A stretch of DNA of 63,831 nt, filler included, from Bigelowiella natans CCMP2755 (GCA_000320545.1; 11 parts of 11 records of this genome joined end to end with filler, not necessarily neighbours in it), one strand, 5' to 3'. Shown: positions 54,413-59,245, counted from the whole stretch's first letter. A program made the numbers and translations. The notes: generated by a model from the letters alone, not told the origin.

Positions 54413-56093
54413 ATGATGAGTTCCAAAGATGGAAGCGCTAAGAGCATCGATGGTGAGACAAATGAAAAACTTCTACATGAGCATGTCCTCCTCGGTTTCT
54501 AGAGAGAAATGAAAGGAATGCGAAAGGTCAGGGGAAGGGGCGAGAGTGAGAGAGAGAGAGAGGCTGCACAGGTACACTTCTAAACTTCTAAAATCTAATT
54601 CAGTTGTTGAAGTCAAAGGGGTGGAACGGTCCAAAGGCAGCTACCCTAATCCTACCAGGGAGGAGTTCGAGAATTTCAGTTGTGAGGAGGTTGTGCGGTA
54701 CTTAAGAGTCGTGCAGGGAAAGTTTCGCTTAAGAGAGGAAACGATCACAGCTGTAAAGGTGTTGGTTTGGAAGAGCATGCACCATGTGATTTTCACTGTG
54801 CCCTCCTGTTTTTCTAAGGCACGAGACGCATTGTTCATCAGCAGCAAGCGAATTGTGTGGCATATACTTCCCATCCATCCACAAATGCCGCCCATCTCCC
54901 TCCGCCTATCCCTTTCGTTTCAATGCATCCCACTGCACTACCCACCACCGTTTCCAGGATCAGGACCTGGATGGCAAGGATCTTTTAGAGATGACCGAAG
55001 AGCAAATGCTTAAGGTGTGGAAAATGGGCCCAGTAAAGAGATTGGGGAGGTTGTTATCCTCCCTCTCAGACACTCAGACTGGAATAGAGACTAAAAGCCA
55101 AGGTGAAAGCGCTATTTGCTTAGTTCTGATGGTGAATGCACGCAACTTTTCTTGTTGGTGGGAAAATTTGGTTGGACGATACTGTTTTTTGTTCTCTCGG
55201 TTTTTCCTCTCCCCTAGCCCTTCCTACCATACACTAACCCTAGCCTCTTCTCGTAATAACTTTCAGCTTACCCTTTGTTTCATCTAACTCAAAACAAATC
55301 ATTATTTTAAAACAAAACCCTCCTCTTTCCCTCTCGACTCTCGTCTGTCGTCTCTATGTCTTTCTCACTCATACACCAGGTAATCAATACGATCAGGGTC
55401 ATTGTGGGGAGTCCCCAGGTAACAGAGCTCCGACTAGGAGCTTAGGGGTTAGAACATTCATCTGCCGTCATAACCTAGTATGCTCATAGTTCGATGCCGA
55501 ACCATTCTTAGGGACTGACAGCGCGAAGGCCAATTCATCCGAGGAGAAATGCAAAAAGGTTGGCGCATTGATCGCTAGAAGTAGCAATACCAAAGATTTT
55601 GCATGTGAATATAATTTCAAATTTTGCTTCAAGCAGCAGGAATCAATCCCCACCTCGCTGCCTTCATCTTAACCTACTACCTTCTCATCTCCTCCCTCTC
55701 ACTCCCTCTCACTTCCATTCATCACAATCATTATCATTGATATTATTGTTATATGTTGCCTTAAACAGTTTTCTCTTTCCCCCCCTCCCTCTCTCCCTCT
55801 CTCTTTCTTTCTCTCTCTCTCACTTTTCTCTATCGCTCTCCACTCTTTCTCACCAAAGTCAAAGACGGAACAAAAGTCAAACCCTGTACAGACGCCTCTT
55901 GCAACTAATCTCCATGCAGCGCAGGAAATGATGTTTGATGCTGCTCCGAGAAAGTTGCAAAGTTTTGAAGACGAAAAATCTGCGGCTGTTTCTCCTCGTT
56001 CTGTTCAAGCGGCGGTGGAGCAGGTTCCAGGCCAATTGGTTGCCTAAAATAGTTTTCGCTTTCTCTGCCCCCCCCCTCCCCCTCTCCCTCTCC

Positions 56094-56147
<54 letters not shown>

Positions 56148-56251
56148 AATGTTGTTGCGCGTAGCGTGCTTGGAATGCAAGTGAGCTGCGGTCAGTTGAG
56201 CAAATGAGTGGTTTGAGAAGTTGAATTCTAAGCACGCTACGCGCAACAACA

Positions 56252-56288
<37 letters not shown>

Positions 56289-57500
56289 TACTTTTCTCTA
56301 TCGCTCTCCATACTTTCTCACCAAAGCCAAATGCGGCAGTGGAGCAGGTTCCAGGCCACATTGCGTTCATATCATGGAATTCAAATTCAATAGACATGAA
56401 CAAGGTATACGATTATGAAGCAGAGTACGAGGCTATATCAAGAGTTGTGCGGGGCTATCCTGATTTCCAGTTCCAGTTATCGAGATGGCGTGCCACCAGG
56501 ATAAACATGAAAAAGGCTATCGAATCGGATTGTTGCTGCATCCATTACGGTGGATACATAGATAGACAAGACGGCCTTTACATCGAAGGCAACGTGATTG
56601 GAGGTAATGCCGAAATTTATCTGGATGGAGAATCCCTTAGAAAAATGTTCCTAGAAACTCCAGCTGACAACAGACCCAAGATCGTGTTTCTAGCAGCATG
56701 TAATAGCGAGGTCTTTGGTGAGAAACTCGCTAAAGATGGATTGGTAAAGCACGTGGTCGCTTGCCAAAATGGGAAGGCACTATTGTCATTTCCATATTTA
56801 GCAGAACATTTTATCAACTATTACTTCAAGGGAAGACTGTATTGGTGGCTTTCGAGCAGGCAAAGAAAAATTTGAAAGAGATTGCTAAGGATCGAGTGGA
56901 CGAAGCACTCTCCAGACTTTCACGGTCACCATTCGGATATTCCCAGTCCGATGTGGAGGCTTTGTCAAAGAGTCTACAGGAAATAGGAGTTCGATACAGC
57001 GAGAAGATGGTTTTTGCTCGCTGCGAGAATGTAGAGGTTGCTGAAAAAGAGGAGATCGAAAAGTTGATTGGTTGGGCCCTACAAATTAGGAATGAAGCAG
57101 ACAAATACATCCTTTTACCCCGTGTAAACGACAACAAAACCCACAACGTCAAGTACGAATTCAAGAAGTCAAGGCGCATCGAACCCAAAGTAGGATGGAT
57201 CCCGGGCCGTATGTCTTACTTCAATAGAGCACCTGTGAGAAAGCAGTATCGAAAAATCCTTGAAAACTGCCGGGCGTCGATTGATAACTACCATGCTCTC
57301 TTGGAAGGAAAACGTGCTGCAAAGTGGGTCCAAATCGTTGGTAAAAAGGACACAGGGAAGACTGCATTAGCGACAGATGTCGCCTGGAGGATGTGGAATG
57401 ACAACGACGGTCCAGATGCTATATTTTGGGTGAGCACGATTCTGAGTTCTCTCTCTTGTGTATGTGTGTGTGTGTGTGTGTGAGTGTATTTGCTATCTCT

Positions 57501-57572
<72 letters not shown>

Positions 57573-58566
57573 ACACGTGTGTGTTGTGTGCACATTTTGA
57601 AATGAAATGTGGATGACATTTTCAGGTGAACCTCACCTGTGTCACCGAGAAAGCAGGTGTTTTGTCAGCCGTGGGTAAGAAAACATAGTCCAACGAAAGT
57701 CCCCACTTGATATCGCTAGATCCTCTCCGAGAGCTGAAAAGAATAGCGAAGTCGAGACGAATCTTGCTGGTACTTGGGCATAATTTGTGTGTTTTAGAGG
57801 GGTGGGAAGGGGTAGGATTTCTAATTTTGGAATGAAAAACCACCCCATTGACTTTTGGACGTATCCCAAATCACCCAGATCTGCGATGATGTGTCCAGTC
57901 GCCTTCAATCTTCTTCAGCGTTTAAGGAGATCCTCATGATTAGCAATTTGTTGCTGCTAAGCACGTCAAGGGAGGCCATAAATGACAATGGTTCCTCCAT
58001 GAAGGTGTAAGACGATCTTGTATGATCGAGGGCCATTTATTTGTGTTCTTGATTTAGTATTTGATATTGCACATCCACACATATTTTTGGACAAGCAGGT
58101 TGGTCAACAAGTTGTATGATCTCAGGTGCCCATGGGAACGTTAACGATTGGGAGTTTCATAAGGTGTTTCCTTGGGTATCTTGCCTCACAGCAAATATCA
58201 GCAACAAGTCTACGACACTCTCATTTTTCAAGGCTCTATTAGGTCTGCATGGTTGTTTTTTTTCATAGAATTTGAACTCGGTCATTACTTGTGCATCGTG
58301 CTCACATCCTCCTAAACCTAATTTTGATAGACAAAAAGGTGTGGCAACACATGTGCAATCCTGGCATGTGCATCAAGCTAGCGAAACGAATTTCCAAAAA
58401 TGGTACGCTAACAAAATCTCCCAGCAAAGAATATTTAGTTGAGGAGGCCACTAAGCTCATTAGCGAAGCGAAATTGGAAGAGGCTAAAAACGTACTGACT
58501 GAAAAAAAATTATATCACACACGCGCGCGCGCGCACACACACACACACACACAAATAAACATATAC

Positions 58567-58609
<43 letters not shown>

Positions 58610-59245
58610 TAGATATAGTCCATTGAATATTCATGATTAATGCACGTGAACACAATATATCTTTATCCTCCGCCCAACCTTTCAATCATGCTTTTACTGT
58701 ACACACAGGACGTAACCACCTCACCGACATCATCAGCTGTATCTAAGCTTGGAAATATTACGTTGTTCCGTTCTACTACGGTTTGTGGATCTCACGCGAG
58801 AGCCCTGAAACAAAGAGATTCACAATCACAATACCACTTGGCGACACCGTGTTTCCATTTTTTTTTAAATGCTTATGAAGGGTGATCGAACACACACACT
58901 TCAACCTTTTTTTGTACTCACGCAATGAATTACCTAAACTAGATCGATATTATCGGCGATCTTGGGGAAGGCAACTTTGGGAAGGTATATAAGGTCAGGA
59001 TCGATATCGATGGCAAGAAAACGGTTGTAGCAACTATTACAAAGATGAATCAGCAAGAAAACGGTCAAATGCATGTTCAAAATAGCAACTAGTACAAAAG
59101 ATTAATCGTCAAGAAAACGGTTCTTGCTGTCTCTTCCTCGATCTGAATCCCATCTCGAATGTTAAACAACGATGCTGATAATTAGGTCGCTGCGATGAAG
59201 CGTGTCGGAAATAACACCGATCTTAGCAAAGAAATCCTTGATGAA
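54413..59245 (+). CDS. SAM - CHAT (caspase-like) - STAND/NB-ARC NTPase - protein kinase multidomain protein (3' partial)
   Basis: SAM: FSCEEVVRYL..K|DQDLDGKDLLEMTEEQMLKVWKMGPVKRL. CHAT: CIHYGGY..RPKIVFLAACNS..VKHVVA..FSRTFYQLLLQGKTV..AFEQAK. Walker A GKKDTGKT (57340); Walker B RILL|ICDDV (57879); sensor LLLLSTSRE. Kinase: LGEGNFGKVYKV|VAAMK..E. Confidence 0.8.

Follow-up and report, generated by a model that had tools for sequence, protein, structure and literature searches.

In animals, fungi and bacteria, cell death and immunity depend centrally on switches of the NOD type, by which caspase-fold proteases are turned on; to our knowledge, little is known of such switches in Rhizaria or marine algae. 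A 63,831-nucleotide stretch of DNA from Bigelowiella natans CCMP2755 (GCA_000320545.1; 11 parts of 11 records of this genome joined end to end with filler), referred to here as the window, carries a split gene on its plus strand from position 54413 onward, from which a SAM domain, a CHAT domain, a P-loop NTPase of the STAND type and a protein kinase had been read. The question raised by this locus is whether it encodes one oligomerising four-domain protein, as the original prediction held. That proposal is unsupported in view of two frame breaks, two in-frame TAG codons and the loss of the candidate catalytic His. The dominant mRNA can encode only a 384-residue product, comprising the SAM domain, a linker and about two thirds of the CHAT domain without that His. 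The locus is probably a transcribed, recently decayed paralog of an NLR-like family of B. natans, and this decayed copy is most likely a pseudogene.

Transcript and reading frame of the locus

Fourteen exons between 54413 and 59245, all with GT..AG borders, are joined by spliced RNA-derived contigs into one transcript with the domain order SAM, CHAT, P-loop NTPase and kinase start. To this extent the original prediction was borne out: its plus-strand GT-AG exons and its order of domains are found on a single spliced transcript, and the motifs it quoted are all present (FSRTFYQLLLQG, GKKDTGKT, ILL/ICDDV, LLLLSTSR, CNPG, LGEGNFGKVYK and VAAMK). The RNA-like data sets used were X15 (2016) and X17 (2018), both from the same organism and from two separate studies. 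Record 8 of X17 (2229 nucleotides) is a single record spanning exon 3 to exon 13, and the exon 1/2 and exon 13/14 joints were supplied by loose contig ends. The twelve introns with tabled joints measure 88-300 nucleotides, and two micro-exons of 39 and 47 nucleotides are present. The exons are listed below, with P and L numbers denoting relatives that are described later.

54413-54452, plus strand: exon 1, start codon ATG at 54413; a loose end of X17 joins 54452 to 54604; a second in-frame ATG at 54371
54604-54758, plus strand: exon 2, N-terminal half of SAM; joint 54758/54958 in X15 and X17; 54% identity to P0011 residues 29-75 (E 4e-13)
54958-55102, plus strand: exon 3, C-terminal half of SAM; RNA joints, weak SAM_PNT and SAM_1 matches, fold of a paralog
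55380-55418, plus strand: exon 4, linker micro-exon of 39 nucleotides; joints 55102/55380 and 55418/55512
55512-55558, plus strand: exon 5, linker micro-exon of 47 nucleotides; RNA joints
55859-56038, plus strand: exon 6, linker; RNA joints; the first codons of exon 7 and its acceptor region recur at the two ends of exon 6 (direct repeats D6 and D7)
56327-57429, plus strand: exon 7, 1103 nucleotides, unbroken in RNA (X17 record 8 and X15 record 5, 0 differences and 0 gaps)
57626-57769, plus strand: exon 8, NTPase strand 2 to the Walker B strand, unbroken in RNA; joints 57429/57626 and 57769/57879; 56% identity to P0001 residues 500-540 (E 2e-11)
57879-58004, plus strand: exon 9, Walker B (ICDDV) and the sensor-1-like LLLLSTSR; RNA joints; E 1e-10 to P0011 residues 573-615
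58126-58242, plus strand: exon 10, helical segment behind the NTPase core, frame 0; RNA joints; P0012 residues 488-521 (E 9e-6)
58331-58491, plus strand: exon 11, helical lid with CNPG; RNA joint; frame 2 matches residues 44-94 of L001 ORF2 (E 1e-12; ORF, open reading frame)
58709-58780, plus strand: exon 12, Ser/Thr-rich linker in a single open frame; RNA joints and translation
58943-59023, plus strand: exon 13, kinase subdomain I with the glycine-rich loop GEGNFG at 58964-58981; joint 58780/58943
59186-59245, plus strand: exon 14, kinase subdomain II (the lysine of VAAMK) and the beginning of helix C; connected to exon 13 by loose ends at 59025 and 59185

An extra intron that had been proposed inside 57626-57769 is not removed in RNA, and the stretch is coding in relatives.

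Frames were assigned by three-frame translation of each exon and by three-frame BLASTP of each exon against the family relatives. Exons 1-7 run in phase in frame A from the ATG at 54413. Within exon 7, frame 0 matches residues 118-263 of P0001 (E 4e-44) and frame 2 matches residues 270-492 (E 3e-59), so that homology in frame A ends at exon 7 residue 152 (P0001 residue 263) and is picked up again in frame B from P0001 residue 270. The exon thus holds the CHAT-like domain in frame A to about 56776 and then, in frame B, the C-terminal helices of CHAT, the linker and Walker A. Frame B enters exon 8 in phase, exons 9 and 10 continue in phase with exon 8, and exons 11-14 are mutually in phase. In place of the single ORF that had been envisaged, the homologous frame changes at about 56776 and at the exon 10/11 junction, and TAG codons interrupt it at two further sites, as follows.

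56774-56778, plus strand: lesion 1, a -1 frame break inside CHAT; last frame-A codon AAG at 56774-76, first frame-B codon GGC at 56776-78
56873-56875, plus strand: TGA closing the sole ORF from the start codon (384 codons), by codon reading
57686-57688, plus strand: lesion 2, an in-frame TAG at a position occupied by Cys in P0011 and by Ser in P0012; the TAG is also in the RNA contigs
58240-58242, plus strand: lesion 3, an in-frame TAG as the last codon of exon 10, where P0002 has Lys
58331-58332 (extra bases), plus strand: lesion 4, a +2 offset at the exon 10/11 junction; exon 11 is homologous only in the frame offset by +2 from that of exon 10

The frame-A and frame-B codons at lesion 1 overlap by one base, at 56776. 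Relatives are continuous here, 2-3 residues longer, and carry a conserved LGD..AP.F segment including LGD; in the window copy this segment is replaced by the break and frame A stops at 56873, leaving CHAT without one open frame. The ORF of the P0002/L002 transcript passes the sites equivalent to lesions 1-3 with neither a stop nor a shift, and the P0012 gene model is additionally continuous at the site equivalent to lesion 4.

Over exons 7 and 8, where lesions 1 and 2 lie, the RNA contigs match the window without gaps or differences (0 of each), and for exon 10 and the exon 10/11 junction the arithmetic of the RNA records allows no gap. In fourteen DNA data sets, 97-98% of the words sampled from 56339-58500 are present. 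Because the RNA contigs and the fourteen DNA data sets agree with the window, the lesions are real at least in the sampled strain. The roughly 470 codons that follow the first break hold two stops only, compared with about twenty expected had the sequence been fully randomised (an estimate from 3 stops per 64 codons); hence the copy either decayed recently or is intact in other strains.

Two further explanations of these lesions were considered and rejected. A frame break at exon 9/10 is ruled out, exon 10 being homologous in frame 0 and the break lying at exon 10/11. As for a reassignment of TAG, the ORFs of paralogs have no in-frame TAG and the frameshifts would persist regardless.

The RNA contigs also record incomplete splicing. 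Contigs retaining intron 2 (54730-54985), which breaks both the SAM domain and the frame, occur in both RNA-like data sets at a depth similar to that of the spliced form; introns 3 and 5 show low-depth retention. Around exon 6 and intron 6 two duplicated pairs were seen, 55817-55868 / 56285-56336 and 56009-56034 / 56333-56358 (88% and 96% identical), and AAVEQVPG occurs twice in the protein; exon 6 and intron 6 look to have originated by partial duplication of the exon 7 acceptor and first codons. Intron 6 also contains a 34-nucleotide inverted repeat (56147-56180 / 56221-56254, 94% complementary, with a 40-nucleotide loop), bordered by (CT)n(CA)n on one side and (CA)n on the other; one RNA contig exits the window inside this repeat, at 56187, and the repeat is probably a dispersed element resembling a miniature inverted-repeat transposable element.

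The contig piece that carries the gene (52181-59325) is eukaryotic DNA with a guanine plus cytosine content of about 45%, many (GT)n and (CT)n runs, and poly-G at both ends; the poly-G runs at 52301-52320 and 59308-59324 appear to be an artefact of sequencing and not part of the genome. On the 5' side of 54400, nothing recognisable was found on either strand by RNA coverage, Pfam or Rfam, and the upstream minus-strand ORFs gave zero Pfam matches. A 66-nucleotide direct repeat without RNA coverage (54016-54081 / 54203-54268, 89% identical) lies 150-400 nucleotides 5' of the start codon and may be a duplication in the promoter region. An Rfam scan of the contig piece returned no match, and an exact look-up of three window ORFs matched no record.

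Domains of the locus and their relatives

Searches with the sequence of the window copy itself did not recover the CHAT domain: Pfam on its own exon pieces, which are short and broken, gave nothing significant and no CHAT match, and phmmer of both exon 7 frames against the PDB found no match. In relatives that are 46-50% identical, Pfam scores exceed the cut-offs for CHAT (PF12770; 30.6 and 28.3 bits, cut-off 24) and for Peptidase_C14 (PF00656; 25.8 and 23.7 bits, cut-off 21.4), and the family profile against the PDB detects CHAT in 8tl0 (E 4.7e-9), in an alignment that pairs up the GHG and AAC motifs. The earlier assignment of a CHAT domain is accordingly supported by way of the relatives, as a sequence-based attribution, but not by the window pieces. 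The putative catalytic columns were assigned by alignment to CHAT/caspase-fold proteins and are as follows.

56555-56557, plus strand: Tyr codon in the candidate catalytic His column, which holds His in 8/8 aligned relatives and aligns with the GHG of 8tl0
56699-56701, plus strand: candidate catalytic Cys (AACNSE), kept; invariant column C125, aligned with the AC of 8tl0

The window copy therefore lacks the candidate His-Cys dyad, its Cys being kept and its His column occupied by Tyr.

The NTPase has a Walker A motif, and its further motifs follow in order.

57340-57363, plus strand: Walker A GKKDTGKT in frame B, aligned with the G.....GK[ST] of all relatives

The Walker B strand (hhhhDD), ILL/ICDDV, is split by intron 8 and is read across the RNA-verified exon 8/9 junction; the sensor-1-like LLLLSTSR is at 57948-57971, and the CNPG motif, conserved with L001, lies in the lid at 58354-58365. 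In relatives, NB-ARC (PF00931) scored 14.9-19.2 bits, below its cut-off of 23.5, and NACHT 13-15 bits, below 26.7, and the family profile matched MLA13 at no better than E 0.33. Structural comparison was made with a model of the NTPase of relative P0007, which has a predicted local distance difference test (pLDDT) score of 73. The top 10 Foldseek matches of this model are all plant CNL resistosomes (E 1e-6 to 3e-5), and its two best structural alignments are to CED-4 (Z 13.8) and Apaf-1 (Z 13.0) and cover about 160 residues at 3.2 Å; Cdc6/ORC (Z 12.3-12.4) follows close behind, and ZAR1 has Z 12.2. From this model we call the NTPase a predicted Apaf-1/CED-4-like (STAND-like) core with a short CNPG lid. 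The STAND identity claimed earlier thus has support, with Cdc6/ORC nearly as close, as regards an Apaf-1/CED-4/plant-NLR-like core in the model of a relative, but not as an NB-ARC domain above cut-off. No winged helix (ARC2) was seen in the approximately 65 residues between CNPG and the kinase, the lid part of the P0007 model has no structural matches of its own, and short relatives terminate about 35 residues past the CNPG motif.

For the SAM domain, sequence scores by themselves were non-significant (E 0.03-0.1). The N-terminal domain of the paralog L003 is 57-61% identical to exons 2 and 3 of the window copy, and its model (pLDDT 88) was compared with the PDB by Foldseek. The matches listed, which include Scm, Ph, SAMD1, Shank, TEL and TIR-1, were without exception SAM or SAM-like Pointed domains and were full-length, with template modelling scores of 0.65-0.80 (normalised to the target) and root mean square deviations of 2-3 Å. 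The paralog model thereby displays the predicted five-helix SAM fold (PF00536) and lends support to the SAM domain that had been read from the exons.

The kinase is seen only as its first 47 residues, the remainder lying past the contig end. LGEGNFGKVYK (including GEGNFGKV) in exon 13 and VAAMK (59186-59200) in exon 14 are in phase and joined by RNA, so the candidate domain has both the glycine-rich loop and the VAIK lysine of protein kinases. With exon 13 as a query against the PDB, all 60 of the 60 matches were N-termini of kinases at the same position (best E 0.022), and Pkinase (PF00069) matched over 27 residues with a Pfam E of 0.07. Exon 14 is followed on its 3' side by a GT at 59246, a (GT)n run and the contig end at 59325. 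Record 19 of X20, a marine metatranscriptome, covers 59192-59243 and extends 99 letters beyond the window. A search of metagenome contigs with the window piece gave no match, and with the family alignment L002 only, and no longer contig or transcript past 59325 was recovered. Searches for homologous proteins yielded two self-like matches and two blanks, the latter carrying little information given the length limit and word index of that search. No C-terminal repeat sensor (LRR, WD40 or TPR) was found in the window copy up to the contig end.

The gene family and known systems

The frame-B part of exon 7, the longest stop-free piece (223 residues), was searched with phmmer against 1.84 billion representatives and matched 10 proteins only; this query, which spans the linker and P-loop, found no sequence-level relative beyond these 10. 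Their clusters include six JGI Bigna1 (B. natans) gene models, by which the relatives also place the window in B. natans, the other members being MMETSP or JGI transcriptome ORFs with no attributed organism. As judged by this search, the family is so far seen only in B. natans and in unattributed marine transcriptomes. A paralog transcript is also present in the RNA data of the same organism, with loose ends at 57379 and 57430. Record 18 of X20 aligns to 57134-57311 with 5 differences and a diverged block of 77 nucleotides; it represents a wild allele or a close paralog and includes no lesion site.

The relatives share a core of CHAT, a helical linker of about 100 residues, the NTPase and the lid, preceded in some by a SAM domain. 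After the lid the tails diverge: NACHT-WD40, TPR, a repeat tail or none in the relatives, and a kinase in the window copy. In L001 and L003 the CNPG lid is followed by a further NTPase, NACHT-like in type (NPHP3_N, 82.6 bits), then by a winged helix of the TANC1 type (HTH_TANC1) and WD40 repeats, whereas P0020 has a TPR tail, P0012 has long repeats without Pfam matches, and P0016 and its group end after the lid. The similarity of the window copy to L001 stops shortly before the exon 11/12 border and the kinase comes after a linker exon of 24 residues, its first residues coinciding exactly with an exon border; this arrangement is consistent with modules having been exchanged at, or close to, such a border. 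Identity to L003 is highest over the SAM exons, compared with 46-49% over CHAT and the linker with Walker A.

Two observations on individual members may be added. In JGI sample 3300017192, two NOD modules stand in tandem behind SAM-CHAT (L001:2180-4483 and L003:3483-5786), and the two ORFs of this paralog transcript are split only by a retained (GT)n-rich intron. P0003 and P0005 (Bigna1 145316 and 137400) have near-identical linker segments truncated at different points, which suggests that more fragmentary or decaying copies exist in the genome.

The four-domain order had been put forward as unfamiliar from any characterised protein. The core architecture is already known: CHAT-STAND fusions are common in bacteria, and fungi have them as well, CHAT appearing in the list of effector domains for fungal NLRs (PMC9815663). 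The variant features of the window copy are the N-terminal SAM and the C-terminal kinase. Bacterial CHAT-STAND proteins (CHAT with AAA_16, NB-ARC or NACHT) are likewise single polypeptides, about 500-800 residues long, in which a caspase-fold CHAT occurs together with a STAND-type NTPase, and the nearest solved CHAT by sequence is 8tl0. Language-model features in the ESM Atlas, taken as a lead only, also place bacterial CHAT with AAA_16, NB-ARC or NACHT as the nearest large clusters to P0012 residues 30-620 (0.92 and 0.90). The Bigelowiella proteins differ in being products of intron-rich nuclear genes, some with an N-terminal SAM, and in having eukaryote-type tails (kinase, NPHP3_N-WD40, TPR).

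Fungal NLRs share with the family the succession of an effector (CHAT), a NOD (NB-ARC or NACHT) and a variable C-terminal part. Both CHAT (PF12770) and Pkinase are listed among their effector domains, and the fungal CHAT- and S8-protease NLRs adjoin gasdermin genes (PMC9815663). However, the kinase of fungal NLRs, where they have one, is an N-terminal effector and their C-terminal part consists of repeats, whereas the window copy has its kinase at the C-terminal end, a SAM domain before CHAT and no recognisable winged helix.

Apaf-1 and CED-4 (NB-ARC, AP-ATPase clade) provide the best structural matches of the modelled family NTPase core, and resemble the family also in the activation of a caspase-fold protease by proximity on an NTPase oligomer, which for the family would be by analogy. 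In Apaf-1 and CED-4 the protease is recruited via CARD, while in the Bigelowiella family it is fused to the NTPase; further differences are the NB-ARC scores below cut-off, the nearly equal match to Cdc6/ORC and the lack of an apparent ARC2/winged helix. The SAM domains of SARM1/TIR-1, Ph, Scm, TEL and Shank drive the formation of oligomers or polymers. The modelled Bigelowiella SAM matches the fold of these domains over their full length; its sequence scores are non-significant, and its own polymerisation is putative.

Readings of the locus and their meaning

Several points weigh against a decayed paralog. All DNA and RNA data may be from one cultured strain, and an intact allele may exist elsewhere; the marine metatranscriptome contigs of X19 and X20 cover no lesion site. 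Despite its premature stop, the transcript has good coverage in two RNA-like data sets, and the largely open downstream frames are also compatible with some form of recoding or with a loss that is very recent or confined to one strain. Logan contigs lose rare variants, which leaves room for a minor productive isoform, and the catalytic role given to the His and Cys columns derives from alignment to CHAT/caspase-fold proteins.

The best of the alternatives, which we nevertheless consider unlikely, is a functional short form. The 384-residue ORF (SAM, linker and a truncated, His-less CHAT) would act, by contacts between SAM domains, as an adaptor, decoy or dominant-negative regulator of intact paralogs, with exons 8-14 as a relic 3' untranslated region. 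The ORF is indeed intact from the ATG at 54413 over seven exons, the SAM exons are the best conserved part of the locus (57-61% against 46-49% to L003) and the transcript occurs in two RNA-like data sets. However, its stop lies far upstream of seven exon junctions, a position that marks an mRNA for decay in most eukaryotes, a caspase-fold domain lacking its last helices is unlikely to fold, and the form that retains intron 2, with its SAM truncated, is about as abundant as the spliced one.

Considerably less probable is a full SAM-CHAT-STAND-kinase receptor in which the breaks are bypassed by minor splice forms, read-through or ribosomal frameshifting. The downstream frames, open and homologous over about 470 codons, speak for it, and two stretches could in principle be removed in frame as micro-introns, namely 45 nucleotides of the form GTAAG..CTAG around the TAG at 57686 (57674-57718) and 17 nucleotides of the form GT..AG near 56790. 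Yet neither is removed in the RNA contigs, both are coding in relatives, and 17 nucleotides is far under the 88-300 of the twelve tabled introns. No slippery heptamer (X XXY YYZ) was seen at the -1 site when its codons were read, so that programmed -1 frameshifting was rejected as a candidate, and the TAG at 58240 lies upstream of the sole donor site in use. Four independent bypasses would be required, and the His would still be absent.

That the lesions are assembly or sequencing errors, as a microsatellite-rich contig of doubtful quality with a poly-G end might suggest, is highly improbable: no lesion lies within a repeat, and the contigs of two RNA studies (gap-free over exons 7-8, exon 10 and the exon 10/11 junction) and the fourteen DNA data sets (97-98% of sampled words) agree with the window.

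The decayed-paralog reading leaves an ancestor whose C-terminal module, after the lid, would have been a protein kinase. This ancestor would have worked as a NOD-type switch, its NTPase oligomerising with the help of SAM-SAM contacts, and the nucleotide-dependent oligomer may have gathered the CHAT protease domains for activation by proximity, as apoptosomes do with caspases. The kinase, as the variable tail, could have been either the sensor of the trigger or the relay of the output. The gain and loss of copies with different tails would fit the birth-and-death evolution typical of immune-receptor families.

A broader proposal, possible rather than probable, is that chlorarachniophytes keep a small, fast-turning-over repertoire of NLR-like death or immune switches, in which a SAM oligomeriser and a caspase-fold CHAT are fused to an Apaf-1-like NTPase and entire sensor or output modules (kinase, TPR, repeat tail or a further NACHT-WD40 unit) are exchanged behind the lid at a single exon border. 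Bacterial CHAT-STAND defence genes may have been the source of the core, and the window copy would be a casualty of this turnover or else a truncated regulator of it with SAM only.

The family is of more consequence than the window copy, which carries a caution: a string of domains recognised in exons should not be taken for a protein before its frame has been compared with RNA and with relatives. The B. natans family shows an NTPase-CHAT fusion with modular swapping of the C-terminal part, including one member with two consecutive NTPase modules. The family is a tractable system in which to examine whether NLR-like proteins serve protist algae in defence against viruses or in programmed cell death, and whether its core is of bacterial origin.

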